DNA of 33,000 nt, taken from NCBI GenBank assembly GCA_011109175.1, contig RDEW01000040.1, positions 279,001-312,000 of the forward strand, given 5' to 3'. Position 1 is the stretch's first letter. Every line of letters starts with the position of its first letter. Position numbers and translations under genes: made by a program. The stretch is from Dicyema japonicum (Eukaryota; Animalia; Dicyemida). Shown here one piece after another: positions 119 to 26,694 of the stretch. Under the pieces are notes generated by a model that was given only the letters and a program-made list of their open reading frames with translations, did not search any database and had not been told where the DNA came from.

Positions 119-1845
119 ATGCTTCTTGTGGAGGAGTTGATTTGCCAATTCACTCAAAGATATTATGGAAATGATGCAAGAAGTGTGTTAGAAACTATTC
201 TGACCAGGCAGAACATACGTAAAGCAGAATTAATTCGAAAATTAAAGAAGTTTTCACAGGATCATATAAATTTGATCATTTGTATTCTCTTACAATACAA
301 GCTGGTTTACATTTCGGAAGATGAGACATTCTTCGTCCCTCTGACTTCCTTATTATTCCGGGATTTGTCTCAAAGGGCATGGACTCAGATGATTCTGATA
401 GATTCCAGTTTCACCAAGCTAGAAATACGGACTTCTATGGCATCCGTTTTACTTGCTAATGGACCGATGAGTCCCGTCGAGATTTTGGAGAAAACCTTTA
501 AATTTGTTAAGGACCAAGCAAAGAAGTCTTTTATTTGCGACCAGCTTACATATCTTGCTAAAACTGGACTCGTTGGATGTCAAGGAAAGTCAGATTTCGA
601 CCAATTTCAGCTGCGAGCTGCATTTTTCAACAAAAGACAGAAAAATCCTTCATTTTTTGGATCCTTGTATGAAAGCAATCTAAGGGAACTGCAGTGTGCA
701 ATCAACCTGTTCATGCGTGACTCCCACGGAGAATTGAAACCCGACATAGACCACTCCGACGTTGAAAAGGTCTCTATTGTTTGCTTATATTAGAAATCAC
801 TCGACTCGCTATGGACTGTCAACTCCCAGTTTGTAAACACGTTGGTCTGTCTCGATTCTATCCACAAATATATCTCTTACGAAATCTCTTCGGTATTAGT
901 ACGATTAAGTCTAGACTTCCGCTGACGCTATGAAGTGCCTGATCTTGGCTTCTTTATGCCAGTCGAATGACTCCTTGTTTGACTACAAAATGAAAAAAGT
1001 GGGGATGACTCAGATCCTGAGGATTTCGAACGATATTTACGGTCTCAACTATTTTCCCAATAAGAACGCCTTGCAGAGAGCCTTTGACGGACTCACTCAG
1101 ATACCCGTATTATGTTGTTTTATATTAAAGTACAAATATGTTGTGGCTGACTATGTGAATGATGTTTACATTCCTGGTTTGTTGTTGGCTGTATTTGTAG
1201 AGATTGAGAGACTGCTGACAGATATGACCCAAAATATTTGTTCGAGTCTAGTGGGGATGAGAATCTCTAGGCAAGCAAAGGATTTCTTTGATGCTCTAAG
1301 TCGATGCCCATGTAAGCTCTATTCTCAGCAGTTGTTGGAGGAAATACTAAATCTTGATGATAATAAAATTACTAGAGAACTGATGTTCTTGTTCAGAGAA
1401 GGACTCATCACCCTCAGAGTTAGGATTTTGTAACATTTGCAGAAAGACCCTTCAGAATCCCCATTGGATGCTGGGAATTGTCTTTTTATGGTGAATTTAG
1501 AGTGTAGCACACGTGGCTGTATTCAGATATTGCTGGATTATCTAAAATTCCTTCTAAGCGAGAGAAAACGATTTATTGATAGCGTCAAGATTTCGAAGGA
1601 TAAATATGATCTTGTTGTATCTCTGCAAACTCAGATGATCGTGGAAAACCCCTCTGAGGATCAATTTTTGGACTACATGCCTCCAGAGGACATGGACAGA
1701 CTGGAAAGGGGGAGAGAAATACTAAACAAGTTCTGATTTTATGTAGTTCAGAATGACTTGTATGGAATTATCATTGGTCGCCAATTTTGTCGATATTGGG
1801 GGAGTATTTGGAAATGTGTGCTTTGAGGAGGTACTATTCCTGTGA
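119..1845 (+). CDS. POLR3C: RNA polymerase III subunit RPC3 (C62/C82), about 528 aa, 7 exons with six 22-24 nt introns
   Basis: Removing GT-AG introns 770-793, 893-914, 1107-1130, 1177-1200, 1419-1442 and 1730-1751 gives one open frame from ATG119 to TGA1845. Segments match RPC3 as I recall it: N-terminal winged helix (EELICQFTQRYYG...ICILLQYKLV; VLLANGPM), SLWTVN (human YWQAN), FREGLITLR, FMVNL...ERK, C-terminal PPEDMDRLE...NK. Two introns are stop-free and in frame, so they rest on alignment only. The last exon is less certain. Confidence 0.85.
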
Positions 1846-2059
1846 TAATGTTGTCGAACAGCTTAATAAGATTACTGTTGATATTTTTTTTATTTTTTGT
1901 TTTTTAGCATTATTTATTCAAAAAACATCAAAGTAGTAATAATGGCAGCCAAGATATTTTAAATGTTACCCTTCGATATCATCCCCCATTCAATCTTAAA
2001 ATTGTGATCAGTTTGTCGATCGCTTAATGCAATCGACCGGATTAATCTAACATCAATAG

Positions 2060-2150
2060 TAGAGAAGGACTGGTATGGACATAGGGATCACTTAATTAGA
2101 CGATAACTCTTGTCCTCTTTTTCGTGATTCTGGGTTGAATTAAATTAAAA
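2060..2150 (+). mobile_element. 3'-terminal stub of an I/Jockey-type LINE (GIT-stop plus hairpin plus TAA-like tail)
   Basis: ggg atc act taa (GIT*), GGATCAC 2085-2091 pairing with GTGATTC 2124-2130, then tgggttgaattaaattaaa. Same layout as the 3' end of the LINE at 20823-22610. Confidence 0.55.
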
Positions 2151-2344
2151 TCAATAGTAGTCCCGAAAAACAAGTTAAGAAGGAAATCAAGTCTAAAACT
2201 AATTTTGATGAAACTGTTTGAATAACATTAAGGATTAAATTAGTATATCATTCAATATATCAAGTTTTTGGACACTTCCAACGCAGCAAGACTCAGGAAT
2301 CGAGCCTAAGCAGTACTTCGGTGTAAACAGTTTGTCTACAGAAG

Positions 2345-2730
2345 CTGGGTAAACAGGAAGATTCTAAAACATTTCAAGAGAGAGTGAACCGAAAACTGAT
2401 GTAAGGGGACGTTCGTGCAGCTGTAAGAGTATTGTCTTGTGACAAATCACTTAGTGATGATTGCCGTGAGAAGTCTTGGAGTTTATCATCTTTGGATTCA
2501 CATGTGTCTTTCTTCTTGCTCACGAAATGTATTTCCATGTCGAAAATTATGTACATTTTTAGATGTTCACAATGTTTTGAACACGTGAGAGCACTATTGT
2601 CGGCTGATGGGACTCTGAGACGATCTGCGGAGTCAATACTGAATGTCAAATTCGATGATCTGGGCTGGACAATGTGAAAACTATTTGCGAGAAATGGGGG
2701 CATTGGGTTAAGATTCTTCCTTGAGGCCAC
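2345..2730 (+). mobile_element. Internally deleted relic of a CRE-clade non-LTR retrotransposon
   Basis: RKLM*GDVRAAVRVL matches RKLSEGGVRAAVRTL (about 5170). RRSAESILNVKFDDLGW..NGGIG matches RSTTERITNVEFDEQGW..FGGLG (about 6470) of the element at 4474-7498. Confidence 0.65.
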
Positions 2731-2734
2731 CCTG

Positions 2735-3470
2735 CCTGATTACTTTTTATCCCTTGCGAACTGCAGTCGCTTGGTCCAAGAAAGTCCTACGTAACGCAAC
2801 CGGACATACCTTGGACTCGGAGCTTGATAGAGTTTGCAAGTTATGGGGAGAGTTGGACTTGGAATTCCCGTCGAACTTTGCTTGCCAGATATGTCTGTTA
2901 TCAAGATATCATTTGCATATATTAGTAATTTTGAATTCGGATCCGATGGGATTGGGAAGTCGGAAATGAATATGTTAAATAGTAATGGGCTTAGGACAGA
3001 CCCCTGCGGAACGCCTCTCGTGATTGAAATATTTTTGGATACGTGTCCTCCGATGCGCACATGAGAAATCAAGATTTTCGTGGTCTGACGCCCCATTATT
3101 CTGTGAGGAGGAAACCGCTCTCTTTCTATATGCCGACACAGCCTCTTGAAGATAATTCGCTCAATAATTTTAGATAACAAGCATATAAGGCTGATCGGCC
3201 TCGACTTTACTGGTTTGAGAATCATTCTGACTGTAGAGTTCTTCCACCATATTGGGTTAATCTGAGTCGTTCTGTGAACACCACGTGGTCCATCCGAGCA
3301 ACACATCGTCTTAACTTCGTTCTCAACCGATTTCTTTCTTTGATCAGTTTCAAGGTTATAGGCAAAATGTCATTTCTCTTCTTACCGTTTCCATTGGAGA
3401 ATACCTTCTTAAACCATAATCGTATGTCACTATGAGGTTTTTTAAGATCCCGGTTCATATTTTCAATTTA
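2735..3470 (-). pseudogene. Deleted RT fragment of a Jockey/I-type LINE, same family as 27960-31400
   Basis: VRMILKP, RPISLICLLSKIIE, GVPQGSVLSPLLFNI, LLIYAND (YADD variant); NRLRTKLRRCV matches NHLRTKLRRCV at 29746. Confidence 0.85.
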
Positions 3471-3579
3471 CATTTGTTACATGGGTTCCTTCGTCCATCT
3501 TGAAGGTTCCTTGTGAGATAATCCCGATAGTTCTCCTAGTCGACTTCTGATATATCATATTTTATAAAGATATCTTCGA

Positions 3580-3825
3580 TGACATCTAGCACAAGACCAC
3601 TTCTTGTGTTAGAAAGCGAGCCATATTTTCATGTTGTTCGCAATGTTAGTCATAAATTTTCCTAGTGAGCAGTTTCCTCGGTATCGAATCAAAAGCCTTC
3701 TGTATGTCAATGGAACAATAACGGTCTTTTGATGCAAAGGTTTACGTTAAAGTCAAGTAAGTAAGATAAGTAGTTGTGGAACAAGCCTTCTTAAATCCAT
3801 GTTGGAAAGATACGCCTGGGAGACC
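3580..3825 (-). mobile_element. RT fragment of an I-type LINE related to 20823-22610
   Basis: Minus-strand translation across frames gives FQHGFKKACSTTTYLTYLT and DIQKAFDSIPRKLLTRKIYD, versus QHGFRDNHSTTTHLTTLT and DITKAFDSVPRKLLTKKIYE. Confidence 0.7.
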
Positions 3826-3856
3826 AGAAATATAATAATTTTTATTAGAAAACTAA

Positions 3857-4473: not shown

Positions 4474-7400
4474 TTTTCAAACACATTATCAGTCTCAGTG
4501 GGGAGCTCCTCGAAAGACTTTTTTAAAAAAAAATCTGTTTGTGGTGGTGTGGTGTAATTGAGAAAAAAGTAACCAGAAGCGATATGCACAAGATCGACAA
4601 AAGAGAAGAGCTTTGTGAATTTTGCAATAAAATTAACAAAAGAAAGCGGCTGATATGTTGTGTCGTTTGTTCGTCGTTTTTCACATGTCATGTGTTGGAA
4701 TGACCAAAAAAGCCCTTACCACCATTACCAACTGGTGTTGCCAGGCATGCCTCCTTCCTGGGACGAAAGCACCATCGACTCCACCTAATTCACCTGAACG
4801 AATATCAATAGATTACCAGAAAACCCTTGAATCAATTGCCAACCTGGCATCTACACGAAGGATCATGATCAAAATTCCAAAAGCTGCCCGTGTTCCTGCC
4901 GCCGACTGTTTACACGATTGTATTGAAAGGGCAATTTCTTCGACTGACCCAGTGGATTGGACACGATTATTCTACTTTGCACCATACACGCTATGTATGC
5001 CCTGTCAGAAGAGGAAAGATCAGGAATCGCTCACGTCTATTGTAAAGGAAAATATTTGCTTGTTTTCTTCTGGAAATTTGTTCAGTGACTCCCGAGAATA
5101 TACCTTCAAGCCCTCAAACCACGAGAACCATGCCTCAGAAACACAAAGATTGGGAAGAGCGATACATCGCAAACTATCTGAAGGTGGAGTCCGGGCCGCC
5201 GTGAGGACTCTAGAAGAGCATAACCGTCTAATTGAGCCAACTGAACACTCCTACGATGCACTGGTTGAACGACATCCTGGTCCGCCAGTGGACGAACAGA
5301 TCCCTACTTGCTCTGGAGAATTACCTAGTCTGATTATTTCTGAGGGGGACGTGAAAGATGCGATCCTCTCATTCGCCCCAAGCAGCAGTGGGGACTTGAC
5401 GGACTCCGTCCAGGACACCTAAAAGACTTAATTGATCAGAATACGGGGAACTCTGGTGTTCGGCTATTATCGGCTATAACGAGGTTAATCAACAGAATGC
5501 TTTCCGGAAGATTACCAGAAGCAATCCGTCATATTATGTTTTCCGCCAAGTTAATTGCCTTTGATAAATGTGGAGGAGGAATTCGTCCTATTGCTGTTGG
5601 GTTTGTTTTTCGTCGACTGGCTTCTAAACTTGCTAGCAGAGCAATCCTTCCGATGCTTGTCAAACAACTGCGACCAACCCAAGTAGGGGTCGGTACTCCT
5701 GGTGGATGTGAGGCGGCGGTTCATGCCGTTCGGATGTTTACTGGAAACAGAACGAACATGCCTTGTGTGGTCCTCAAGATTGACATAAAAAACGCCTTCA
5801 ATACCATACGGCGCGATGTAATTTTGGAAGATTGTCTTACCCATTACCCGTCTATATATAATTATGTTCATTGTTCGTATGGAAAACCGTCCAGTCTTGT
5901 ACATGGGAAATACTTCATTCCCTCGTCGTGTGGGGTTCAGCAAGGAGACCCACTAGGACCGGCATTGTTCTGCCTCGGTGTCGACCGTGTCATGAGATGC
6001 CTTACTACTCCGCTGAACGTGTGGTATTTGGATGATTGCACCCTGGGAGGTCATCCTAACAATGTATATGACTGTCTACAGAGATTACTAACCAATTGGA
6101 TACGCTTGGTTTAAAGCTAAACGCATCCAAATGCGAAATTGTTAATTATGGATTCTCCCGATATGAATGGAATCGGATCCTATTAATGTTTCGGGGGATT
6201 ATTCCTAAAATATCGGAAATCGAGCCGGATCATTTGGAAATACTTGGATGCCCTCTGGCTGAAACTGGAATTAACGACACTCTGTTGGCTAAAGAACAGC
6301 AACTAAGAAAAACTTTTTTACGCCTTGGGATGCTGGATGCACATACCTCTCTTTTTCTCATGAAAAACGCTTTATCCACGCAGAAATTAAATTACGTCCT
6401 TCGAGGAGCTCCATGTTACCTGAAAATGCAACAACTCGGGGCGATTGACTCCCTATTCCGGTCTACGACCGAACGTATTACTAATGTCGAATTCGACGAA
6501 CAAGGATGGGAACAAGCAACCTTGCCCGTTCGCTTTGGTGGACTCGGAATTCTCTCACCATCTGATTTAGCACACCCGGCATATCAATCCTCATTGGACT
6601 CCAATCAGAATTTGATCATGATGATTCTCCAGCTCCCATCAGAGTCGTCAAAGATCGAAGATTTGGTACACCCTAAAGTCAAACAACTCGGGCAGAGAGA
6701 CCTTTATGAGTCTGTTTGCGAGGATAAATACGAGAGGCTTTTGAAAATATCTAACCAACACCGACGAGCCTGTCTTTTAACTGCAAGATGCGAGTGGAGC
6801 GGGGCTTGGATCAATGCCCTACCCATTGGAAACGTGGGAACTCACCTAGACGATGAAACGGTCCGCACCGGAGTCTCCATCAGACTTGGATTGAAAGTTT
6901 GTCAACCCCATGAGTGCCGATGCGGCCGGAAGGTCGACTGCTATGGACATCATGCCCTTTCTTGTCGAAAAAGCGCAGGTCGATTCGCTAGACACAAGGC
7001 TATAAATGAAGTGGTGAAGCGCGCCCTCGAGTTGGCGTGATACCCATCCATTCTAGAGCCAACGGGCTTGAGTAGGGATGATGGGAAGCGACCCGATGGA
7101 ATTACTGTCTTCCCCTTCTCTCGGGGCAAATCCTTAATTTGGGATGCTGCCTGTACTGACAGCTTTTCCCAGTCTAAACTTTTGAGGTCGGCAATGAAAG
7201 CGGGAGAGGCCGCCCGTTTATATGAAAACTCAAAAATAAAGAAATACAGCAGCCTCCTAAACCGTTTCCATGTACAGCCAGTGGTCGTCGAGACGAGCGG
7301 AGTCTTTGGCCCCAAGACGGTCTCTTTCCTTAGAGCACTTGGGTGTCTATTGACCAAAGGCTCGAGGGAGCGTCGGGAAACCGAGTGGCTTTTCCAAAGG

Positions 7401-7498
7401 ATATCCCTGGCAGTAGTCAGAAGTAACAGCCACTCGATCATATCCGCTGGACTTTAGAACGATTTTACTTTATAAATTACGTACTTTTTCTAAAAAAA
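4474..7498 (+). mobile_element. Near full-length CRE-clade non-LTR retrotransposon; single ORF (about 958 aa when repaired) with PHD finger, RT, CCHC and RLE
   Basis: ATG4584 to TAG7457. RT motifs RPIAVG, KIDIKNAFN, GVQQGDPLGPALFC, WYLDD. C-x-C...HALSC...RH, KRPDG...WDAAC, VVETSG. Three -1 frameshifts (about 4680, 5392, 6093) and one TGA at 7038-7040. A tail and TSD present. Confidence 0.9.
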
Positions 7499-10240
7499 AA
7501 TCTTTGTATCAGTAGTTATAGTTGAGTCAACTCTGATCTCAACAGCTTCATTAGCCACTACAGATTGGACCGAATGATTCTTCAATTTCTTCGACTGGTT
7601 GATTCCGAATTGGCAACACAGATTGCAGATGAATACATTTCATTACTTCATTGTGTCTCTTCAAATAATCACTGTTAAGCATTCGTCCGCATCTGGTTGT
7701 CAGATAATCGATTGCTTTCTTTGCAGAGTGGCAGTGACTGCAACTTGCTCCACCAGTTTCAAAAAACAAATTACGGTCTTGAACCAAACACAATGTTCCC
7801 TCTGAGTGTGGAGAATTGTTCCCGTGCATTAACCACGTGGAGGATTCACTAATGTCCGTATCTGTTTCTTGGAAGCATTAAAAGGAGTTGAATGCAAAGA
7901 CTTCCTTTTTATTTGTTCCATTAGGTATTCATTTTGTAATCCTTGTATAATTTTAACATTTAGGCTCTCTGGTTGTTCAATGCTATATATCCGAGTTAGG
8001 AATTCTACGATTGTGTCCATATGTGTTTTTTTTGATTTAATGACCCGTAGAATTCCTGCTCTTCTTGTGCACCAATAGATTTTTTCTCTAGGTCCCTGAG
8101 AAATTGAAAAAGCATACGTTCGCTCTTATGGGTTATAGAGACCAATCCTTTTCCTAGTCTGTTCCTTGGCATATAAAGTCTTTTTTTATTAGAAGGTTTC
8201 AGATGAATTCAATGACTTGTAAGTATCCCGCGTATTTTTTTATCAATGTTCTCGAATTCGTTTGGATCGATATCGACAAGTCCGATGTAGTAATTATATA
8301 GTGACAGTGCATGTTCGTTGATGGCCTTGAACATGCTAGCAGAGTTAAGTTTCGTATCTGCTAAATTATTTATTCTCTTGTTCATCGTATCAAAAATTGC
8401 CTTCAATGCATCATTCTTCAAAACAATGCTTGACTTATCTTCAAGCACTCTCAGGTAGCGGTGACCATCAATCTATCAAATAACTTTGCCTCCTCAGATA
8501 AGCTTCGTACATTTGTTGTTGACTTATCAAATTTCTTCTCAAGTCCAGCAGCTTCAGAGAAATCATTAACTTGATTCATCAATCTTACAATGTATCCTCT
8601 TTATGGGAAAATATTTTTAAATCCTCCATAAACAATAGATGATTTGCTGCGTATGTTAGTGACATCCAATCTGGATTGTTAATTATCACTCTCGGAAATT
8701 TTTCATTTAATAATTTGCTTAACACATCCATCACAAGGACAAAGATCTGAGGGACAGGAGTCGCCCTGTAGGATCCCCCTTTTCATTCACTACTCAATCA
8801 TTTTCTGACTAAATGTCAATTTAATCTTCCATTTAGTTACCAAGTTTTTAATAAAATTAACGATCCAAACAGGCAATCCAGATGTCTCTAGTACTTTATT
8901 CAGGAAATCATGATCCACGGAATCAAAAGCCTTTTTAACGTCTATCCAGGCAGTAGCCAAATTATTCCCGTTCTCCTGATTGATACACTGATTTATTACT
9001 GCTTGCTCTTTGGCCCCTTGACAGAATCTACGAGTTCCCAGTTGGTTGTCACTAATCAGTATGCTTCAATGTAGTCTGATAGTTTCCTATTCACACATTT
9101 CGTTGTCAGCTTGTACATATTTGGCATACAGGTAATAGGTCTCAAGTCTTTTGGAGACTCACAATTAACTTTTTTCGGGATCAAATATGTTATTCCCGTG
9201 TAAAATAACTTTTGAGGTGAGTATTCACCATGAATTATCTTGACGATTTCTTCACAAAGAGAGTCATGTATTGATGTAAATTTCTTAATAAAGAAATTGT
9301 ACAGTCCATCGCATCCAGCTGCTCTCCAGTTTGGGAAATTTTAATCATATCTTAGTGAAATTAGCATACATTTCTTCAGAGCCTGTAGAGTCCTTTTTTA
9401 ATTGCAAGACTTTTTCCTCAATGTCTTGTTTATTCCAGATGTTCTCCCAAAATGCGAGGCACTCATTTTCATTAAAGCCAAACTTGGCTTTTTCATGTTC
9501 TCATTCAGATTCCTGTAAAAATACCTCCATTAAGTTCAAAACACCAGTTCTGTCTTTTAAATTCGTTTCTTGACTGATGAATTTTTAGTTTCTTTTCTAA
9601 GACTTTGATTTCATCTTGGATACAAGATACAATTCTTCCAATTTCTCCCTTTGATTTTCGAAATCCACATCCACACAGAATTTCTCTGGTTTCTTCGTCA
9701 TAACTTTAGTTTGATTTCTGCTCTCCAATTGTTTGGATTTGTACCATTCTCTTCTTCAATACAATCAGTTTCAACTAAAAGTGGTGACTCCAATTACTCT
9801 TTTTTCTTGTAGATGTTGAGAGAGTTTCATAAGAACATTGGCCAGCATAAACGATATCAGTTATATCGTTTAAATTTACAGGAGGATTAGATTTCATACA
9901 TTCATAGATCGCTGAGTTAATTCCTCCTAAAAGATCCTTTTTAAAGAGCTGGTAAGGAATTTTCTTAGTTGGTTTCCGTAAATCACGAGGAATCAATTTA
10001 ATTTTCCCAATTTGTAGAGAAAATTCGTTATAGCATCTTGTAAAGTTGGAAATTTCGGTTGAAGGGTTTTGGGAAATTTTATCTGATAAAATATCTGCTC
10101 TTCTTTCTTCAAGTTTCAATTTGCATCACTGCGGAACTGGATTGTCTAGAAAGGACCCACACACAAGAAAAAGAAGTGAAGATCATTCCTTGGTTCTACG
10201 ATTAGTTAAAATTAACTGTTCTTTACTTAAATAAAGTGTG
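7499..10240 (-). mobile_element. 5' and RT part of the degenerate R4/Dong-clade element
   Basis: WRAAGCDGLYNF, LRPITCMPNMYK, WIDVKKAFDSVDH, GILQGDS, HLLFMEDLK (YMDD variant), CSHC...TRC...YLKRHNEV. Many stops and indels. 5' end approximate. Confidence 0.85.
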
Positions 10241-11410: not shown

Positions 11411-13170
11411 TTATTATTTATTATTATTAGCAATGTCAGCGGAACCAGAAAAGTTAATTTGAGATTCCACTTTTGCCATGCATCTCTGGACACGCGCTGT
11501 GAGTCGTTTCCATCCTCCCCTGTTTCTCGCATCGCCCACAGATCATCCAGATCCTCTCCTGTTTTCAGTTTTCTTCCTATGCAAGTGAGTTCTTTGTCGA
11601 TCTCGATACGTTGTTTTATTTAATACAGAAAAGTATGATTCCGTGGCCTGATTGATCGGTGCCATTTCCGAAGCTCTTATGTGCAAAGCTCTTATGTCTT
11701 TGTTGTTTGAGTAATTCTATATAGCTCGTCATTGGTTATCTGTTTTGGCCAGTAGACTCCCAGAAGTCGTAGTTGTTTTCTATGGAAAGAGTTGAGGTTT
11801 TCCAGTTCTTTGGTGGTTAGGCCCCAGGTCCTCGCGTTATAAAGTAGAATTGGTTCGATAAAGGAGTTGTACAACCGAATTCGAAGGCGAGTGCCTATGT
11901 ACATTCGCCGCATCGAGATCTCCCACAATTTTTTGAAAGAATGTTCTCCACTTTTCCTTGTTTCTTGTCATGCAACGAGATATGCTAGTTTTTTCCGTTT
12001 TGTCTGGGTTTAATACCAGGGACCAGTTTTCCAAACCTTGAGGAATCACTTTTAGTATAGTTTCCAGCGTATCCCTATCCCGGCAGACAAAATCAATATC
12101 ATCGGCGTAGATTATTTCCATCACGTTAGAAAAACAAGGTCTTAGAGCTGCCTCCAGGTATATTATGAATATGACCGGGGATAACGAGTCTCCCTGTGGT
12201 GCGCCGGTGTCGGTTTTAAATCTTGTTGAGTTGTAATTTCCCACGTGCACTGATAGCAATGTGTCGGAGAGTCAAAATCTGATCATACGTGATTTATCCT
12301 CGTCTAGAATACTCTCCATTACGTGCATTAGCTTCTTGCGATGATAGTGTCGAAAGCATGGGATAAGTCAATTCAAAAGGATCGAGATTATTTCTTTGTG
12401 TTTTTGGCTCATTGCACACATCAACCTGTGACTACATACAACGTCTGCAGTCGACTTCCAGGTCTGAATCCACTTTGAATTGGGTTCAAGAACTCATTTA
12501 CAGGGCCTGAAATACGATCCGATCCATTACAACAATGGAGAGTATTTTCCTCATTAGTGTAATCGGGCGTAGGTTGTTTAGATATCCTCTTTCCTTTCCA
12601 GGTTCCTGAATTGGGATCAAAGTGCAATTTCCCGCATCAAATGTACTGGGACATTTGAACGTTCTGTTCAGACCTGTGCTGATTAACTCAGCCACCTTGT
12701 CTGGCGCGGATTTCAATATTTCTGTATTCACGTTGTCTGATCCAGGAGGTATGCCATTCTTGAGTTACCCAAAGCTGAAACGACTTCGTAATGCGTGATG
12801 CTTTGATTCAAGTCTCTGGGAATTCTTTCGAACGATTTCAAATTTTCATCGAGATTTAGTCGTTTTTTGTAAAAAGAAGCAATTTTATTTGCTGATTCCT
12901 GGCCGTTGATTATTACATTTCTTGTATCATCAAGGACTGTGATTCTTTCCGGTCTGGTATTGAGGGATAATTGTTTAACATCAGCAAACATTCTTGAACC
13001 AGGTTTGTACCGGTCGGCGTCTTTTGCCAAGTAATCCACTGTATATGGACTAGTTCCCTCACTCTTCTCTTTATTTTGTATTTGATTCTGTTTGCGTTCT
13101 ATTTCAAGAGTCAGTTTGGCTTGTCTAGTCTGACGAATTAGAGAATTTGGCGGATTCGAGAGACTTATTG
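11411..13170 (-). mobile_element. Degenerate RTE-clade LINE (RT, C-terminus, TAA-rich tail)
   Basis: LRPITL, IQSGFRPG, GAPQGDSLSP, YADD, RLYNSFIEPILLYNARTW, FHRKQLR..GVYWP..ITNDELY, ARNRGGWKRL. Tail at 11411-11428. Confidence 0.8.
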
Positions 13171-14159: not shown

Positions 14160-14164
14160 TATAT

Positions 14165-14883: not shown

Positions 14884-16864
14884 TTATTCAATAAAAGTTA
14901 TGGAATCATCCTTCAATTCGTTGACAATATCATTCATTATGCTATAATAACATCATCCAAACTTGAGATATTTTGTCCTCCCTCCTTCCTTCATCAGTTT
15001 GATGCAGAGCTCAATCGCCTTAAGCTGGTTACTACAAATACTCCACACAACTACATTGAAACAACAGAAGTCCCAGTAGCCATGAATTCCACGAACTGTT
15101 CTGCACATTCTCCGAATTTTACTTTCAGCTAACATTACCACACGGACAAACCTCCTCAGACGGATTCACGACCTGTTGCATGCAGTCTATGGTCATGAGC
15201 CTCAGGAACCTGTCGTGATTGACCACAACTGCCCGTTAAACCCAACTAGAACTATTAAATATCCGTGGCAGTAAATGCTGTCCGTTCTCGGCGATTATTC
15301 TCCTCATTAGGTAGGCGTAATTCATCTTTTGGCTAAGTTCCCCCTATACTCAGCTTGAATCGATACCTTCTTGTTCAGTATGTCCATAGTGTCCACAATA
15401 ACGTCTAAGGGGCGATTAATATCATCGAATTTATCAGTTTTAGGCTAAAATAAGGCAATTTATACGCAAAATTCGATGAGGTGTTCACAAAGTCTTCAAC
15501 ACAAAAATATGAGTTTGTACCGTGCATATAAACACGGAAGATTGTCTGTATGAGGTTGTAGTTCTTTAGTCTAAGGCCCTAACATTAAAATTCTTCAACA
15601 AAATACCATTTCCAGGACAATATCGAGAAATTTGTCTAAAACGGTGAAACAAGCAACTCACGGTCCATCGAATCGCTTAGTAAATATTGCCTCACGGTCA
15701 CCGCGTGGAAGAAAAAGTTGGCCAACCGATCACTGATCGGATTGTCATAATAGTTCATAGCGTAGGCTATTCTACACACGTGTATTATAGTCGAAGTTTC
15801 AAAACATTCTAAAATAAGCAAATCAGCAAACCAATGTCCAGAGTCCTAAACTGATTGATCAACGACAGCGCACAAGAGACTCCATCATCATTGACCACCT
15901 TCAGTCTTGCGATGTTGTGTAAGATGGCGTTTAATGTCCCCTGGTTGCAGGTAACTCTGTTTTCGACCATCTGGTGCAAAACAGTCTTAAGTAAAAAGAC
16001 GGGCAAACGTCTGAGACCTTGAGAATTTGCCTAATGGTATTGGTTTTCAAAAGAATGGCAGTCAAATAGCAGTTGTAGACAACAGTAGGCACTGTAGTGA
16101 ACCATTGAGCAAACCTTTCTGGGTGAGGTCCAGTTCGTGGAAGTAATCTTCAACTTTATGAAAATCGTTGAGCTAGAATTAGCAGAGACCTTACATTTGC
16201 GGCTGAGAGAATCTTGAAAATTTTTGAATGTGAAGATTTGGGGAAATCCTCACAGGGAATGTTGTTGAATGAGAGCAAAGCCACCAGTTTGGAAAGAAGG
16301 GAAGGTTCAATTTCGACGGAAGCTAAATTTGAGGTATTTCATACTCTTTTTTAATTGCTCGTAGTAGAACTGGGCCCTCTGCGGGTTCTGACGTTCAACA
16401 GCGTCCTTTAAATTTTCGAGGTCGGGCTTACTCGAGTCGTATAGAGATTCGGGGGCAAAGTTCTGACCATTGAGCCTACAAATACCTTGTTTTCGCTTAG
16501 ATTGTAGCGAAAGTGGTAGGGATGCTTGTTTATGTACCACTTGGCCACATTCTTGCCGGCTAAAATCAGATTTAGTTGTTTGCCCTAAAAATAATAAGAA
16601 AATCAAAACCGGCCCGAAATATCGCAGAGGACGAAATTTTAGATCATGGGTGCATCCGATAGTCCTCTTTAATTGAGAGGAGGAAAGAGCCTTGAGGACT
16701 GCATATGAATCCCTATTTAGATAATAGATAATATACCTGTTTTGTCGGACTGGGATTGCGAATAGTGGGTCACTTCCTGTTGATTTTGCTCGAAAATTGC
16801 TTGGGTTTTTAAAACCTTACAACCTTATTATCACCGAAAAATTGGCATGGAACTTTGTACACAT
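14884..16864 (-). CDS. PTCD3: Pentatricopeptide repeat protein PTCD3 / mitoribosomal mS39, about 526 aa, 17 introns of 21-28 nt
   Basis: Introns (plus-strand coordinates): 16800-16823, 16713-16736, 16585-16609, 16463-16485, 16323-16344, 16173-16194, 16092-16114, 15986-16008, 15809-15831, 15636-15661, 15579-15606, 15445-15465/15467, 15344-15366, 15229-15252, 15129-15151, 15032-15054, 14942-14962. Peptides AVLKALSS, AGKNVAKWYINKHPYHF, LHQMVENRVTCNQGTLNAIL, HLLPRIFN, KFGECA and EGGRT match recalled human PTCD3 in order. One junction needs a GC donor or a 1-bp fix. The C-terminus may run on toward about 14760. Confidence 0.85.
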
Positions 16865-18095: not shown

Positions 18096-18480
18096 TTACA
18101 CGTTTTTATTTTGCTCGTTAAAATCATTTTTGTTTGAGCTTAGTAGAGAGTTCCCTAAAATCAAAAATAAGTATGACTTTTTTTCAGATCATTTTTGTAT
18201 CCTAGAAAATAAATATAAGGAAAAAAACTTGAAGAAAATTTGCCCAAATTCCCTAAGTTGGTGGTCATTTCTTCCATCCTTCGGTCCATCACCCTGAGAC
18301 TTCTTCTGCGGTCTAATTCAATGGTTTTTATGTTTTTTTGAGAAATCAGTTTTTCTTTAGTATTTTTGTTTCTGAGTGATTTGAACGCGTTCCTATCACT
18401 GAAGATTTTCTCTTTAAGTTCTTCAACGATTGAGAATGGGCTCCCCTAAATTTTCAAAAATCGCCTACTTTATCCGTCAT
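18096..18480 (-). CDS. Small orphan protein (103 aa, basic, coiled-coil-like) with three micro-introns
   Basis: ATG18480; introns 18446-18468 (23 nt), 18202-18228 (27 nt), 18155-18177 (23 nt); TAA ends at 18096. Product MTDKGSPFSIVEELKEKIFSDRNAFKSLRNK...ELDRRRSLRVMDRRMEEMTTNLGNLG...QNKNV. No homolog recognised. Confidence 0.6.
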
Positions 18481-20614: not shown

Positions 20615-20790
20615 TTTTAAACCCTAAGATCACAAGAAAAAATGCCAAAGCCGGTGATCCCAGCTTCCAATAATTCCCACACTCTCCTTGAGCGTTGCGC
20701 CAGCGAACTCATTGCATTCTGGAAGTTTCGAATTTCTGCGGAGGAACTCGATCTTGGAGTCTTTCTTTAAAACTGATCAGGTAGTGTGAA
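20615..20790 (-). mobile_element. LINE 3'-end stub with terminal hairpin
   Basis: GATCAC 20628-20633 / GTGATC 20654-20659, then agggtttaaaaaa on the minus strand. The reading frame passes through ...ELLEAGIT. Confidence 0.4.
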
Positions 20791-20822
20791 CAATAATCAT
20801 TTGACCACCTCTACCATTTGGG

Positions 20823-22610
20823 ATTATTATTATTATTATTATTACCCCAGGATCACTGGGTCAAAGAGAAAGAAATAAAAGTTCTCATCTAACTAAGTGA
20901 TCCCAGACCGACAAAGGTGAGGACGAGTCCGGCGGGGTCGAGAATCCTGAACAGCTCTTCTCATAGGACATGGCATCGGCTCACAATTTCTGTATGATTG
21001 TAGATAATTCGATAGTATTTGGAATAGAGGGCAGCTCGGTAGAACAGCCTCCTTTAATAGTTTTCGTTGTATTTCAATTAAAAAATTTTCAATAGGTTGG
21101 ATGTTGTGATCTGGTCCAATTAACCTCATTGCAGTCTCCTCGATTGCAGATAACTTCAATGTGGAAGATCGTGACATTTGCATTGCCCATGAAGGACTTG
21201 CATACGTCATCGTTGGTCGGATGAATTGTTTGTAAATCGTGGCAAGGATCCCAGTTTGATCTCTAAATATTTTTGAGAGCACTTTTAAAATTCTTAATTT
21301 TTTCAGAGCAGAAGTTACTCTGTTTTCAACATGCCGGATAAAGGTGAGTCCCTGATCAAAGGTTACTCCCAGAATCTTCGGTGTTTTGTTAATAGAGATA
21401 GCTTCGTTCTTCATAAAGACTTTTGGTTCGATACAGAGCTGTCTCTTGTAGGTGGTAAACAGTGTGACAAAGGACTTTGCTGCTGATGTGTCAAGTCTCC
21501 GCTTCGAGAGCCATAGTTCCAAGTTATCGAGCATTTGTTGAGCCAACTGAGTCGCTGATTGAATGTTTCTGTCCTTGGAGGCAAGAATGATATCGTCGGC
21601 ATATGAGAGGATTAGACAGTTTTCATTACAGGTTTGTGGCATGTCGTTTATGTAGAGATTGAAGAGTAGGGGTGATAGTGGTGAGCCTTGAGGGACTCCA
21701 TTTGGGAAATAGCGAGATCTTGATTTGATGTTGTTGCAGAGTACTTGTGCTCGTCTTCCATTTAGGAAGTTTCCAAGCCAAAGTTTCAGGTTCGGATGGA
21801 TGTTGGTTTCATATATTTTCTTTGTTAGAAGTTTCCTAGGGACTGAGTCGAACGCTTTTGTGATGTCCACGGATATAAGTACTGTCCTCTGATGGGGTTT
21901 GGGGAGTTAAATCCTTCCGCAATGAATTGTGTGAGGGTTGTAAGGTGTGTTGTCGTCGAATGGTTGTCCCGGAATCCGTGCTGGGTCGGAGGTATTGAGA
22001 TTGAGTCTTGTATTTTTTCCAAAACAAGCCTTTCAAGGATCCTTGAGACCGGACTTAGAATAGATATTGGGCGATAGGAAGATGGTTCATCTATTGGTTT
22101 GTTGCGTTTTCGGATAGGTCTGATTAGAGACTTCTTCCATATTTCAGGGATTGTGTTTGTGTTAATGGAGAGGTTGAATATATAGGCTAATAGTTCCAGG
22201 GCTCGATGGCCTAGGTGCTTCAGTTCACATGTGGTTATGTTGTCTGGTCCTTTGGCCTCTGAGTTGTTGGCCTTAGATATGGCTCTGCGAACATCCTGAC
22301 TAGTAAATAGGATCCAGTATCGAAGCGTTTTAATTCAATCTTTTTCAGGAATACTTGGTGTTCTTTTGAAAACTTCCTGTAGGATATAGATGTGTAATAT
22401 TTTATCGGAGTGTCTGGTTTTATGTAGACTTCGACTTTTCTCTCTGGGGAGGGTCTTTTGATGTTTTTGATCCACTTCCACACTCTTTGCATTGGGGGGT
22501 TTTTGTAGAGAGCTTTCGATAGTCTCGTCCATCTATTTGCATTTTCTGTCTTTATGTTGTTGTCGATCTCTCTGTTCAATTCTCGTATTTTCCTGATGTT
22601 CTCTTTCTGT
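20823..22610 (-). mobile_element. 5'-truncated I/Jockey-group LINE (RT and C-terminus, (TAA)n tail)
   Basis: AKGPDNI, YRPISILS, QHGFR, DITKAFDSV, GVPQGSPLSP, YADD, KILGVTFD. Seven-unit ATT repeat at 20823-20843. Frameshifts near 21895 and 22320. Confidence 0.9.
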
Positions 22611-22700
22611 TAAGATTCAGGCATAAAATTTATTTTTAAGGCAAAATACTAATAAAATTATTTAATTAAAATAATTTAAATATACTATTTGTGATCTTCA

Positions 22701-23702
22701 ATGCGATCTTGTGGTTATCCCTAAATTTATAAATCATAGTTCTCTCTAACATTAACCTGACAGTTCAGTCATCAAAAATTGCGAAAATCTCATCCTCCAG
22801 ATATTTGAGTTCGTCTGCCTTTGACATCAACGAGTGCAACAGAGATCTTCGTCGTCTTCAGATCGCCAAGGAAGTCGCTGTGGATCAAATGCGATTTCGT
22901 GACTGGCAGAGGGCCAACGACATCCTTTTTGGAAAGGATCGTGATTTTTCCAACTACCCGTCCTTCGAACTTCGCGAGAATACCGATCCTGTTTATTTCA
23001 AAATTATCCCTGCTTCCTGGTTCTCTCGCTTCCAATCCCTGACTGGAGTCACTGGTACTCTTACCGTTGACTGTAGGTCCATACATTTTCGCATTAACGT
23101 TCGCCTGTACTCTACTTTCCAAGGAAATCTACATTATGAACCACGATGGGAAGGAATTCCTCGTCTACCTGGCCGTGGTCTACTTCTTCGTTTCTGTGTT
23201 CGGTCCCAAGGTTCATCGACACTTGGAAAGCCTACATACGGTTGGGAATTTTGTGACCCATGTGTTTAGCAATATTTAAATTCCGAAGTGTTAGAGTTCA
23301 CCGCCAAAAATTTGGAAGTAATAAAATCTGACCGCCAATACTTTGAGAAGGCCATAAAGGAAGTTGAAGGGATCAGGGATATCTTTGCCGTGATGCGGGT
23401 TGTCCCTTATCTTAATTGCAGTACAACTTAAATCTACAGTTGGAGTCGGCCTACAGGGAGAGATTGGCAGAGTTGCATAACTCTGTTAAAAGAAAAATGG
23501 TAGTGGAAGTTGGTATTTCAGGATTTCCTGGTGGAGAGGAAGAAAACGGAGCAGAATATCCTCCAGAACTTCACCGTGGACTGGATCGTGACCCAGGTGA
23601 TGGCGGCGATTACCCCCCAGCTGGTAATCTGGGACTTATTTGTAGGAGAAGGATAGTCTTAATGCGGCTATTGGACAGCTCAGACTGATTGCTAGCAAAT
23701 GA
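22701..23702 (+). CDS. ATP5PB: Mitochondrial ATP synthase peripheral stalk subunit b, 285 aa, six introns of 22-29 nt
   Basis: Introns 22714-22739, 23055-23076, 23241-23269, 23399-23421, 23500-23521, 23624-23645 give an open 858-nt CDS. Acid-free S/K/R-rich presequence, DRDFSNYP, LTGVTGPY, LSKEIY, YRERL, DWIV, EKDSL..IGQLRLIA, all collinear with animal subunit b. Confidence 0.93.
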
Positions 23703-24699
23703 TTGACTTAACTCACTAATATGACTAATATAAATTGGTGTTTTTTACTAATAGGGAAAACGCTTTATTTGGGTAAATTGTTAGTGTCATCGTCCATGTG
23801 GATGTATACTGTTATGAGGAAGAATATCCCCATTCCTAGCAGATTTGTTATTATTACTAGCTCCTGCACTCCAATCATCACAAACACGTCTTACTAATTT
23901 TAAATATATTTTAATTTATTATTTAATTGTATTATAATTTATTTATTGGGTAACAAGCTTCAGCTTTAGATGCTTTTTACGAAATCTCATCCTCGAGGAG
24001 AGCATGGAGGCACAAAAAATTGTTTGTAATGTCGCATAGTAGCGAGATGACTCTTTAGGTTGCGCTTTGTACATAATAATTGGCTTTGGTTCAAAGATAG
24101 TCATGGTGAGGGAGGACCCAATGGGGAATGAAGTGAGAGTTTTTAGTCTGTACGTACTTATGTACATCCGTTATTCGTCAATGAGGTAGAGCGAATTAGT
24201 AAATGAATATTTATCCACCAGTCTAGTTATCACAGTGACTTATCCAGATGGGCATTTTCGGTGATGATTATGAACTTCCTTAATTGGTTGTTTTAAAATT
24301 TTCTTTCTCGGTTTCCAACTCATCCTGATACTGCCGTAGGTGATTTCCTTACTATTCCCATGATAATACTCTTAGAGATCTCAACGAGAATTAAAGAACT
24401 TTAAAGGAGTGTCATATGCAGCTGATGCTTATCAAGGAAAACCAAGATCTTTTAGTTGGTTTCTATTTTTTATTAAAGTTTTAAGATTTGTTTGAACTAG
24501 AAGTGAATTAAGTTGTTTTCTCCGATGTCTGGGACTGGGAAAACAGGAAAGGAGTTTCATGAATCGGTTCGCAGGAGATATATTCTCAATACTAGCAGAA
24601 TTATTCATAGAGTAGAAAAATACTGATAGGTTGCCAGGGAGTTAACGGTTACAATAAATGAGGGTTCACATAAGTCCCTCTTAAAGAAGGTTAAAGTAA

Positions 24700-24955
24700 C
24701 CTTCTTGAGTGACTGTCAGAGTGAATGGTTCAAGAATTCTACTTTGGTCGCACTTTGAAGCAGTCAATGGAAATCGTGGTGAGGGAATACCATAGTTCTC
24801 TTCCAAGAGTACTTTCATGTTGTTTTATGGGCGAGAAAGATCCGTCGAGCATCAAATTATTTTCCAATCGCACAATAGAGCATAAATTGTAGAGTTCCAT
24901 TTTTTATATTCTTTGGCCAGTGGATGCCTACGATTTTCCACAGCTGATTTCTGTG
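24700..24955 (-). mobile_element. RTE-clade LINE C-terminal relic
   Basis: HRNQLWKIVGIHWPKNIKMELY matches HRKQLRLLGVYWPKQITNDELY at about 11750. Confidence 0.5.
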
Positions 24956-25045
24956 GTGATTATTATTATTTTTTATTTATTAACCTGATTTTGTGGAGAT
25001 TAAGAATAATGAATAAACAAATTGTAAATTAATTTATTAAAGAAA

Positions 25046-26694
25046 ATGAATCAGTTATTTAAAAAATTATATTTCAAATATAAAAAAATTAAAATAGCAC
25101 GTGCTCTCGTCGACGATTGTTGTGGAAATGGTTGTCAGCGAGAATATAACAAATTATTTAATCTATATTCGTACAAATACAACAAACAGGACTCTCAGTG
25201 ACCTGGAGTTCAAGAAACTAATGGTAAGGGTCATCAATCACTTTAGAAAATCAAATGGCAGGAAAAGTTGTCTGCACACGTCGAAGATTACAACAACACT
25301 CTTATCTGTGTGGTCATCCATTACCCCAATCTAATAAAGCCTGTACTATCGAAAATATTCGACGATTTTGCCCCAAGTTTCTTTCCCTCGCATTTTAGTT
25401 CTTTCCCCTAAGGAAGACGTGAATGATCATATGTCTCAAATCCATGGCTCAATTGACGCCTCATTCCGCTTGTTTGTCCGCCTAGCAGAAATCTCTCCAT
25501 AGTAGCTGTTATCTAAAACCTTTAGCGGAGTTCAGTCATGTCTGGTTTCCATAGTACAGAAGGCCTACCCCTTCTACAAAAAGCATGAGCTCACAGTCAC
25601 TCTGTTTGTGAAAAATTTGTTGGGGATAGTCTCCTGTGTCCCCTCAGTCGATACCAGACGATCAGTGGTCCTTATGGTCGTCTCCAATAGTCTCATCATT
25701 GATGTATTCCCCCAACTTAACCATAGACCAATATTGACCATGCCTGGCTTCCTGGAGAGTCTCTTTCGTCGAATCCCCATTCAGAGGACGCTGTTCTGTT
25801 CGGGAAACTAACTCAGATAATGAGATGTTTTATCCACTTTATAAATCAGGGTACAAGGGTGGATTTACAATTTTAGATGTGATTGGCCTGAAGGATTGGC
25901 TGCGTGTATTCGAGGACACGTTCCTGCTGATCAGTCGGGTATGCCAGTTGCAGTTTATAATGCTACACGTGCTAACGAAATATAACGTTATGGGTGGTGT
26001 GATTTTTAGAAAGGATTTGATGCAATGGCTTTGTATTTGTGGCGGAGAGTCATCGATGTGGAGAGAGGGTTGGTAGTACGGTTGAACTCGTTGTCTTATT
26101 TGAGATCTCTGCTGATTCATGCTGATGGGGTCCATGAAAGGTTTGCTTTTCGATCATTTCAGAGTCATCAAATTTTGTGTGGGCAAAATGGCAGATTGGC
26201 TGTGTGGTTTTGTTGACTACTACAGCAATAGGGAGATCAGTCCCAACAATTTGAGCATTTTTTACAATATATTTGAATCCTTGTCTTCTGTGTTGTTGGA
26301 ATATGTCCACATGGACAGTTATGTGGCTGTACGATGCCTTGATGGAGTTCTGGGATCACGATGGAACCCTCTGGCTTTTCTTAGAATGGAAACTGCCGAG
26401 TTGTTTGTGCTTGTTTTGTGGAGAAGTCGGCATTCTTTTAACGCATTTTCTATTCTGAGAAGAAATCAGCGATCAGAGGTGGATAATTCATCGTTGGTTG
26501 GTGGTCTTTGGGATCCTTTCGGAACTGTGTTGTGTGAGGACATGAAAGGTCTTGTTAGGACGTCAACCAGAATCACGGCTGAGAGAATTAATTTTGAAAT
26601 GTCTAATATGCTCTCAGACCGCAGCAAAATTGATGATTCTGATGATATTCTGTGGGACACTATTTCTCGGGATTTGGCTGAAAGTTGTATTTAG
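25046..26694 (+). CDS. RRN3: RNA polymerase I transcription initiation factor RRN3 (TIF-IA), about 488 aa, eight introns of 19-26 nt
   Basis: Introns 25171-25189, 25224-25246, 25377-25398, 25502-25525, 25704-25726, 25851-25876, 25987-26009, 26141-26162. Peptides YPFYKK...FVKNLL, CQLQFIM, YLWRRV, SYLRSLL, WNPL, ILRRNQR and WDPF are collinear with RRN3 (FPF.RK...YVHNLL, CHVQF.M, HLWKK, NYIGSFL, LNPL, IIERNNR, FDP). The start may instead be ATG25128. Confidence 0.88.

Follow-up and report, generated by a model that had tools for sequence, protein, structure and literature searches.

Tiny predicted introns of Dicyema japonicum are enriched for an adenosine 7 or 8 nucleotides from the 3′ end, a putative branch point

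In myxobolid myxozoans and Dicyema japonicum, GT-AG introns have a median length of 22 to 27 nt, a 5′ splice site that reads GTa, and a 3′ splice site that amounts to barely more than AG (Hadjez et al., Mol Biol Evol, Sept 2026, PMC13644364). Two to three weakly conserved A residues lie upstream of this AG in both groups and were proposed to be the branch point, and in genome-wide logos drawn by length class, the distance between the A and the AG grows with intron length. The branch-interacting region of U2 is conserved in myxozoans, which also have U2AF1/2 (PMC13644364). The A pattern in the tiny introns of dicyemids is thus already known, and the statement of an earlier, sequence-only reading of the DNA studied here, which knew of no such description in an animal, is out of date.

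In the ciliate Stentor coeruleus, introns of 15 or 16 nt have their putative branch A at position 10 or 11 (equivalent to −6), and the U2 box is conserved; there is no strong branch consensus, the flanks are U-rich, and the predicted lariat is sharply looped (PMC9505925). Giardia, Trichomonas, and microsporidia, which have few introns, use fused branch-point/3′ splice-site motifs with a strong CTAAC-type consensus, and Irimia and Roy (2008) saw no signature of a branch point among the small number of dicyemid introns known at that time (PMC2483917). The animal branch site is degenerate, reading yUnAy in human (PMC2367711).

Predicted introns in five genes

We analyzed a window of 33,000 nt of D. 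japonicum DNA, in which 35 GT-AG introns in five genes were called by reading-frame continuity and length; the presence of an A was never a criterion. All 35 are predictions, with alternative GT-AG solutions at about half of the junctions, and GT and AG ends are found in 35/35 by construction, because selection was limited to GT..AG segments. Lengths of 21 to 24 nt account for 29 of the 35, with a mode of 23 nt, and removal of the introns allows genes 1, A, B, and C to be translated without internal stops. Positions within introns are given from the 5′ end (+) or from the 3′ end, where the terminal G is −1. The window has dicyemid-type introns and a transposable element load and heterozygosity as in PMC6736024; the nearest transposable element relative is in the host Octopus sinensis.

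Gene 1 (positions 119 to 1845, plus strand) is an ORF chain with weak similarity to RPC82/POLR3C, its first exon giving a weak Pfam HTH_9 (RPC82) match (E value, 0.024; below the curated cut-off). Four introns are required by its frame. The intron at 770 to 793 (24 nt, A at −7) is the unique frame-restoring GT-AG segment between open frames of 229 and 43 codons, and unique solutions were also obtained at 893 to 914 (22 nt, A at −7 and −8), 1419 to 1442 (24 nt, A at −8), and 1730 to 1751 (22 nt, A at −7). Two additional intron-like elements in frame within this gene, at 1107 to 1130 (24 nt) and 1480 to 1500 (21 nt), were picked on composition alone and stand outside the 35; both have A at −7.

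Gene A (22805 to 23702, plus strand; five introns) encodes mitochondrial ATP synthase subunit b according to Pfam: exon 2 matches positions 2 to 43 of the Mt_ATP-synt_B profile (E value, 5.8e-5; above the curated cut-off), and exon 5 matches positions 117 to 149 (E value, 0.096), collinear with the exon 2 match. The frames that follow two of its introns, at 23055 to 23076 and 23500 to 23521 (both 22 nt, A at −7), carry these collinear matches. At 23399 to 23421 (23 nt, A at −7 and −8), the acceptor is unambiguous and the donor ambiguous, and the frame after 23624 to 23645 (22 nt, A at −8) is continuous to the C terminus. The remaining intron, at 23241 to 23269, is an exception of 29 nt with A at −10 and −14 (+20 and +16) and is the sole solution in the range of 18 to 32 nt.

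Gene B (25128 to 26694, plus strand; seven introns) is RRN3-like, on the basis of weak Pfam RRN3 matches (E values, 2.7e-4 and 2.4e-3; both below the curated cut-off). Its introns lie at 25224 to 25246 (23 nt, A at −7), 25377 to 25398 (22 nt, A at −7), 25502 to 25525 (24 nt, A at −8), 25704 to 25726 (23 nt, A at −7 and −8; an alternative path is possible), 25827 to 25849 (23 nt, A at −7; alternatives are possible), 25987 to 26009 (23 nt, A at −8; also obtained by a blind ORF-chaining program), and 26141 to 26162 (22 nt, A at −7).

Gene C (14884 to 16864, minus strand) is an orphan ORF of 519 amino acids that is translated continuously once 17 GT-AG segments are removed; a search of 1.84 billion representative proteins with a 169-amino-acid piece of it gave no relative. 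Unique solutions that the blind program also picked are found at 16323 to 16344 and 16173 to 16194 (both 22 nt, A at −7 and −8) and at 16092 to 16114 and 15809 to 15831 (both 23 nt, A at −7), while the introns at 15344 to 15366 (23 nt, A at −7) and 14942 to 14962 (21 nt, A at −7) are unique, and the one at 15986 to 16008 (23 nt, A at −7) was picked by the blind program as well. The introns at 16585 to 16609 (25 nt) and 16463 to 16485 (23 nt), both with A at −8, were called as a pair between which both frames are open. Others lie at 16800 to 16823 (24 nt, A at −7 and −8), 15579 to 15606 (28 nt, or 21, A at −7 and −8), 15229 to 15252 (24 nt, A at −8), 15129 to 15151 (23 nt, A at −7 and −8; alternatives are possible), and 15032 to 15054 (23 nt, A at −8), and a length outlier of 44 nt with A at −7 (15445 to 15488) is the sole frame-compatible candidate found. 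Gene C also contains two exceptions: an AT-rich, frame-optional, intron-like segment of 24 nt, in frame, at 16713 to 16736 (A at −4 to −6 and −10) and the intron at 15636 to 15661 (26 nt, or 22 with another donor; A at −10, +17), whose acceptor is fixed and donor ambiguous and which the blind program also picked.

In gene D (minus strand), an intron at 18446 to 18468 (23 nt, A at −7 and −8) links an ATG mini-exon to a 94-codon frame, and a low-confidence exception lies at 18202 to 18228 (27 nt, A at −9). A further intron-like element outside the 35, at 18155 to 18177 (minus strand, 23 nt, A at −7), was picked on composition and also appears in the blind ORF chaining.

Adenosine at −7 or −8

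An A occupies −7 in 23/35 predicted introns and −7 or −8 in 31/35; it is present at −8 in 17/35 and at each of the other positions from −3 to −15 in 2 to 9/35. In the four exceptions, A is found at −10 (two introns), at both −6 and −10 (one), and at −9 (one). These counts come from a separately predicted set and agree closely with those of the sequence-only reading, which had placed A at −7 in 26/40 introns and at −7/−8 in 36/40; the kinds of exception that it had listed (four introns with A at −6, −9, or −10) recur here. The coordinates of its four example introns (23055 to 23076, 25377 to 25398, 26141 to 26162, and 23500 to 23521), each 22 nt long with A at −7, were confirmed.

Such an enrichment might be an artefact of hand prediction, of AT-rich composition, or of selection for intronic stops, given that the introns are all predicted and AT-rich and that the gene C model was curated with the hypothesis already known. 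Against this, when intron interiors (22.8% A) were shuffled and the best position or adjacent pair was scored in every trial to correct for position, the observed counts were reached in 0/20,000 trials. Decoys point the same way. The 1,010 other GT..AG segments of 21 to 25 nt in the window have A at −7 in 30% and at −7/−8 in 48%, and GT..AG decoys within predicted exons have A at −7 or −8 in 52%. In the T-rich decoys of 21 to 25 nt (n = 144), the values are 22% and 39%, and in 107 frame-joining GT..AG decoys, which were picked by the blind ORF-chaining program in the transposon, antisense, and other regions, they are 37% and 49%; the 35 introns have A at −7/−8 in 89%. Where the flanking frames leave a single possible acceptor (19 junctions), A is at −7 in 13/19 and at −7/−8 in 17/19 (P = 2e-4), and the three intron-like elements picked on composition alone all have A at −7. 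The A at −7/−8 belongs to a stop triplet no more often (12/31) than other intron A residues do (35/100), and the A residues were reported independently from the whole genome (PMC13644364). The enrichment in tiny predicted introns is therefore confirmed as real, and we regard an artefact as very improbable.

Sequence context and spacing

At −7 and −8, A is the only enriched base, and G is nearly absent (1/35 and 3/35, respectively). T is found in 18 to 26 of the 35 introns at each of positions −6 to −3, downstream of the A, and a pyrimidine at −3 in 33/35 gives a YAG end, so that the putative branch A, pyrimidines, and AG follow in the usual order. Genes 1, A, B, and C together have 28 introns of 21 to 24 nt; at the 5′ site of these, the third base is T (14 introns), A (13), or C (1), and positions 4 to 6 have no clear base preference. 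T stands two bases 5′ of the A in 20/31 introns (45% expected, P = 0.02), a pyrimidine follows the A directly in 25/31, and both occur in 18/31. The potential for pairing with a U2 GUAGUA box averages 3.4 of 6 pairs, marginally above the 3.0 of shuffled introns (P = 0.037). Both signals, the UnAy context and the pairing with U2, are weak (P of about 0.02 to 0.04, n = 31); the context of the A weakly follows the degenerate yUnAy pattern of animals. The sequence-only reading had thus overstated the case in finding no branch-point consensus, and these same signals run counter to its view that the A is chosen without U2 pairing. No snRNA gene was found within the 33,000-nt window.

The constrained, T-rich stub and YAG directly after the A would also be expected if the A belonged to a longer 3′ splice-site motif (A-TTT-YAG) recognized by a protein such as U2AF or an SPF45-like factor, with the branch elsewhere. 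In several introns, such as those at 1419 and 1730, other A residues fit UnAy better, and in human SPF45 takes the place of U2AF in some short introns whose pyrimidine tract is truncated (PMC8363638). However, a nucleophile better fits a position where A is the sole enriched base and G is nearly absent, and the A that pairs best with U2 is most often the one at −7 (12/35 introns). The branch reading has also been made for Stentor (PMC9505925) and myxozoans (PMC13644364). We consider such a motif quite unlikely.

In introns of 21, 22, and 23 nt, the A peak is at −7 in 2/2, 8/9, and 11/14, respectively, which places it successively at +15, +16, and +17 counted from the 5′ end; A is at −7 or −8 in 23/23 introns of 21 to 23 nt. 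In introns of 24 nt or more, A is spread over −8 to −10 but keeps a 5′ coordinate of around +14 to +17; only some half of the introns of 24 to 29 nt have A at −7/−8. Leave-one-out likelihoods for the 3′ and 5′ anchors tie overall, the 3′ anchor being better by about 8 log units at 21 to 23 nt and the 5′ anchor by about 7 log units at 24 to 29 nt, where the class of 24 nt and up comprises 11 to 12 introns and includes the least certain predictions. Anchoring to the AG would thus hold for 21- to 23-nt introns only. In two introns with natural indel alleles, the A lies at −7 or −8 in the variant form: a 1-nt insertion after 25384, found in 4/4 genomic DNA runs, which have no splice joints, makes the intron at 25377 to 25398 23 nt long with A still at −7, and a 2-nt deletion at 23261, seen in DNA runs, shortens the intron at 23241 to 23269 to 27 nt with A at −8.

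A pure ruler, which would set the branch about 7 nt back from the AG and leave U2-branch pairing no role, accounts for the constancy of the 21- to 23-nt peak as its 5′ coordinate shifts. It also agrees with the weak constraint on the bases around the A, with the A at −6 in 15- and 16-nt Stentor introns alike, and with the insertion allele at 25384, which lies upstream of the A. It is opposed by the 24- to 29-nt introns and by the published logos, in which the A shifts away from the AG with length (PMC13644364). It is likewise opposed by the T upstream and pyrimidine downstream of the A, as U2 pairing predicts, and by the intron at 23241, whose 29-nt form (A at −10) coexists in the sample with the deletion form (A at −8). 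We therefore judge a pure ruler unlikely. The earlier proposal, in which distance from the AG determines the branch site, fits the 21- to 23-nt introns better than a 5′ anchor does and those of 24 to 29 nt less well, and the two anchors are inseparable in this window.

From the enriched A, the bases around it, and the way its position varies with intron length, we infer that the A is the branch-point adenosine of U2-type GT-AG introns that have shrunk to about 22 to 24 nt, near the minimum of the spliceosome (probability, roughly 70%); a role for the −7/−8 A as branch nucleophile is plausible. Such introns would consist of GT plus A or T, about 12 free T-rich bases, then the A (+15 to +17, equal to −7/−8), three to four T residues that may replace the polypyrimidine tract, and YAG. 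Both spacings would then be near their minimum, with the branch about 15 to 16 nt away from the 5′ splice site and about 6 to 7 nt away from the intron end, and the A would appear position-fixed because both are at or near this limit simultaneously; a ruler from the AG would be unnecessary. Since the A is at +15 to +17, the predicted lariat loop is about 15 to 17 nt, as had been proposed. In view of the weak UnAy context, U2 snRNA probably still plays some part through residual pairing, and in longer introns the added bases would appear mostly between the branch and the AG. The most likely explanation of the feature is thus ordinary U2-type splicing at minimal spacings. It is doubtful, though conceivable, that two-sided geometry is the main determinant of the branch, requiring a minimum of about 7 nt to the AG and about 16 nt to the 5′ splice site, with U2 pairing and the binding of U2AF to the 3- to 4-nt pyrimidine tract playing minor parts. 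If true, this would mean that a metazoan spliceosome works by reading distances and accepts less space between branch and AG than vertebrate spliceosomes tolerate.

Comparison with known systems

The introns in this window resemble the myxobolid/D. japonicum class in their median length below 30 nt, their narrow length range, their GT(a) 5′ site, and the A residues shortly upstream of the AG. In contrast to the weakly conserved A of that report (PMC13644364), the A here is nearly invariant at −7/−8 in introns of 21 to 23 nt (23/23), and its UnAy context is added by the present analysis. As to the reported movement of the A away from the AG with length, there is no shift here from 21 to 23 nt, and at 24 nt or more the A is spread to −8 through −10 and fits the 5′ anchor better (n = 11 to 12).

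Like the introns of intron-poor protists (PMC2483917), these have a short, constrained branch-to-AG distance, whereas the genes here are intron-rich and the consensus is very weak. They do not belong to the fused branch-point/3′ splice-site class, as the bases flanking the A are weakly biased and do not form a CTAAC-type consensus.

With Stentor coeruleus they share a position-fixed putative branch A that lacks a strong consensus and has U-rich flanks. The ciliate, however, has introns of 15 to 16 nt, a loop of about 10 nt, and A at −6, compared with 22 to 24 nt, about 16 nt, and −7/−8 in this animal, and Stentor intron length is almost invariant, whereas a tail of introns here reaches 29 to 44 nt. 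With lengths of 21 to 29 nt and A at +15 to +17, they would work in the same way as the Stentor-type class without being members of it.

As in the human yUnAy site, U is weakly preferred two bases 5′ of the A and a pyrimidine directly 3′ of it, with pyrimidines and AG downstream. Human branch points lie about 18 to 40 nt from the AG with a long pyrimidine tract between, and an AG within about 10 nt of the branch is normally unused. In the introns described here, by contrast, the putative branch would lie 6 to 7 nt from the AG, with a tract of 3 to 4 nt.

Adenine enrichment near the 3' ends of the predicted introns

The gene set was built by reading frame, and all introns discussed here are predicted. 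A GT-AG segment was taken as an intron when its removal kept a long reading frame open and its length was typical; the adenine was never consulted. Counting from the 3' end, with the terminal G as -1, 23 of the 35 introns in our gene models carry A at -7, and 31/35 carry it at -7 or -8. The remaining four differ: two have A at -10, one at both -6 and -10, and one at -9. In the sequence-only reading, the corresponding figures were 26/40 and 36/40, and its exceptions had A at -6, -9, or -10; both counts clearly refer to one and the same set of introns. The four introns it had offered as examples were also found where it had placed them, each 22 nt long with A at -7.

The interior A content of the introns is 22.8%, and A occupies the other positions between -3 and -15 in 2 to 9 of the 35. 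When each intron's interior was permuted and the best single position or best adjacent pair was scored, the observed counts were reached in 0 of 20,000 trials. The window's 1010 other GT..AG segments of 21 to 25 nt had A at -7 in 30% of cases and at either position in 48%, the T-rich ones among them (n = 144) in 22% and 39%, and GT..AG decoys within predicted exons gave 52% for either position. The false chains produced by ORF-length chaining were reused as a further control set: 107 frame-joining GT..AG segments from transposon, antisense, and other regions, picked by a blind ORF-chaining program, scored only 37% and 49%, so frame-based selection is not the source of the signal. A single GT-AG solution within 18 to 32 nt existed at 15 of 33 junctions, and the alternatives shared a common acceptor at 4 more; among these 19 junctions with an unambiguous acceptor, A was present at -7 or -8 in 17 (P = 2e-4) and at -7 in 13. 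Three intron-like elements lying outside the 35, at 1107-1130 (+), 1480-1500 (+), and 18155-18177 (-), were found within genes by composition alone, and all three have A at -7. Taken together, the enrichment of A at -7/-8 in the predicted introns is real and statistically robust. Stop-codon/NMD selection was considered as its origin and rejected, given that the A at -7/-8 lay in a stop triplet in 12/31 cases and other intron A residues about as often (35/100).

Gene models and genomic setting

The introns fall in five gene models. Gene A (22805-23702, +; 5 introns) encodes mitochondrial ATP synthase subunit b (Pfam Mt_ATP-synt_B): its exon 2 matches domain positions 2 to 43 above the curated cut-off and its exon 5 matches positions 117 to 149 in preserved order, and these collinear matches confirm the frames made by introns 23055-23076 and 23500-23521. 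Gene B (25128-26694, +), interrupted by 7 introns, is RRN3-like, its match (E = 2.7e-4) falling short of the curated cut-off, and gene 1 (119-1845, +), with 4 introns, weakly matches RPC82 HTH (E = 0.024). Gene C (16864-14884, -) contains 17 short introns whose removal alone restores a 519-codon ORF, and the small gene D, starting at 18480 (-), has 2. In a full phmmer scan with a 169-aa piece of gene C, none of 1.84 billion representative proteins proved to be related; the gene, whose predicted product looks helical-repeat-like, is either an orphan or very fast evolving. Neither gene 1 exon 1 nor the ATP synthase b region had a match in word-index searches, exact-protein look-up found nothing, searching PDB sequences with exons of genes 1 and B was unproductive, and the collections searched contained no protein or transcript record of this organism.

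ORF-joining scans and ORF-length chaining were far too unspecific as intron finders in this TE-rich window, and a codon-usage likelihood model (852 training codons) was too weak to decide between alternative paths and missed introns supported by homology. Some elements are intron-like but in frame (1107-1130, 1480-1500, and 16713-16736), leaving the ORF open with or without their removal. Likewise, the 25- and 23-nt pair at 16585-16609 and 16463-16485 is frame compensating, with both frames open in between. The 44-nt segment at 15445-15488 (-), with A at -7, +16, and +17 (plus signs counting from the 5' end), is the lone predicted intron of its size among introns of 21 to 29 nt and the sole frame-compatible solution found at its junction.

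The window has a G+C content of ~39% and is rich in reverse transcriptase and LINE fragments (2743-3369, -; 4637-7454, +; 8793-9065, -; 11840-12271, -; 20896-22609, -), with a few host genes between them that are split by GT-AG segments of ~22 to 24 nt. Rfam and tRNA scans detected no snRNA or tRNA genes in it. The closest relative of one of its reverse transcriptases is an Octopus sinensis protein (65% identity), the remaining matches reaching at most 40%. Two separate transposon regions, 5486-7117 and 7716-9348, show ~70% nucleotide identity to one 43-kb, transposon-filled O. sinensis contig (VCDQ01010770.1). These octopus-like transposons could have moved horizontally between the parasite and its host, or the octopus assembly could contain DNA of the parasite, D. 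japonicum being a kidney parasite of O. sinensis (Lu et al. 2019, PMC6736024).

Four sequencing runs made in 2019 from one sample have ends with Nextera adaptors and, relative to the window, SNPs and small indels at scattered sites; over 22650-28600 they represent genomic DNA, with even depth across intergenic sequence and no joints. The D. japonicum genome has been described as having 36.7% GC, 1.24% heterozygosity, and a repeat share of 49% in which LINE ORF2 copies are numerous; Nextera mate-pair libraries were used (Lu et al. 2019, PMC6736024). The transposons, octopus-like reverse transcriptase, Nextera runs, and SNPs and indels of the window agree with that description. At 25067-25094, an AT-rich stretch directly upstream of the RRN3-like gene, contigs from all four runs diverge into unrelated sequence, pointing to an assembly join or to a polymorphism, structural or by insertion. 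At 28023-28420, contigs in all four runs are 3 to 7 times deeper, as expected of a high-copy repeat, here opening a more G+C-rich element at ~28184-31365.

Sequence context and spacing of the adenine

T is found at each position from -6 to -3 in 18 to 26 of the 35 introns, and 33/35 have a pyrimidine at -3; this stretch is a 3- to 4-nt remnant of a pyrimidine tract ahead of YAG. Around the adenine itself, T lies two bases upstream in 20/31 introns (45% expected; P = 0.02), a pyrimidine follows directly in 25/31, and both occur together in 18/31, a context that corresponds to the degenerate yUnAy branch motif of animals. With the U2 GUAGUA box, 3.4 of 6 pairs could form, slightly more than the 3.0 in shuffles (P = 0.037). 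The sequence-only reading had held that these introns have no branch-point consensus; given these figures, "none" is too strong, although the consensus is indeed very weak. A very weak consensus is in line with the report of Irimia and Roy (2008; PMC2483917) that the small number of dicyemid introns available at the time showed no branch signature.

Since most of the introns are 22 to 23 nt long, -7 and +16/+17 are nearly one position. Over all introns, leave-one-out likelihoods for 3'- and 5'-anchored profiles were tied, each ~10 log units better than a flat model. Separated by length, the introns gave a different result. With the three extra elements counted in (38 in all), A occurs at -7 in 2/2 introns of 21 nt, 8/9 of 22 nt, and 11/14 of 23 nt, while its 5' coordinate shifts from +15 through +16 to +17, and the 3' anchor leads by ~8 log units. 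A pure ruler measuring from the AG is a possible account of the shortest introns, in which the peak stays at -7, but the longer introns oppose it. At 24 to 29 nt, A is kept at -7/-8 in only about half; its position ranges from -8 to -10 yet remains close to +14 to +17, and a 5' anchor is favored by ~7 log units, although this small class of 11 to 12 introns includes the least certain predictions and gives only a hint of 5' anchoring. The shift agrees with the genome-wide statement of Hadjez et al. that A residues lie farther from the AG as introns lengthen (PMC13644364). The claim of the sequence-only reading that the branch is chosen by distance from the AG was therefore not established, given the likelihood tie and the opposition of both the 24- to 29-nt introns and the published data.

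Two natural indel alleles within predicted introns point the same way as the length split. In intron 25377-25398, a 1-nt insertion at 25384, upstream of the A, lengthens the intron from 22 to 23 nt in 4/4 runs and leaves the A at -7. In intron 23241-23269, a 2-nt deletion at 23261, downstream of the A, shortens the intron from 29 to 27 nt in 2/4 runs and puts the A at -8 instead of -10; the sample contains both alleles. These patterns hint at a two-sided spacing rule, which we offer as a suggestion.

A putative branch point in near-minimal introns

The adenine at -7/-8 is most likely the branch nucleophile of ordinary U2-type introns reduced to near-minimal length, a reading that is plausible but unproven; a protein-bound extended 3' motif in place of a branch A is less likely. 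The A would appear fixed because two distances, 5' site to branch (~15 to 16 nt) and branch to 3' end (~6 to 7 nt), are each minimal or nearly so, with weak UnAy pairing to U2 probably still contributing. The enrichment, context, and length dependence of the A are observed, and from them we infer its chemistry and the spacing model. Branching at this A would give a lariat loop of ~16 nt and place the branch 6 to 7 nt from the 3' splice site, with a pyrimidine stub of 3 to 4 nt. Vertebrate spliceosomes normally ignore an AG this close to the branch, 6 to 7 nt being well inside that range.

Introns of 22 to 24 nt leave almost no space for the usual splicing signals and so may reveal the minimal needs of the metazoan spliceosome; if the branch reading is true, dicyemids and myxobolids would be natural systems for studying how U1, U2, SF1, and U2AF fit on a very short substrate. 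Because several of the introns are in frame or form frame-compensating pairs, ORF-based gene callers read through them, and a model combining A at -7/-8, a T stub, and YAG would aid their calling.

The A pattern at -7/-8 is already known. The sequence-only reading knew of no description in an animal, but the core pattern is published in the work of Hadjez et al. (Mol Biol Evol, 24 September 2026, PMC13644364) on 22- to 27-nt introns of myxobolid myxozoans and D. japonicum, very probably the same species as that of the window. In the myxozoans, the branch-interacting region of U2 is conserved, and U2AF1 and U2AF2 are both present (PMC13644364). What the window adds is a sharper local count, with a nearly invariant A in 21- to 23-nt introns (23/23 at -7 or -8), the weak UnAy context, and the suggested two-sided spacing rule. 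A parallel is provided by Stentor, whose 15/16-nt introns carry a putative branch A at position 10/11, equivalent to -6 (PMC9505925); this system would work like the introns of the window, albeit in another length class and another kingdom.
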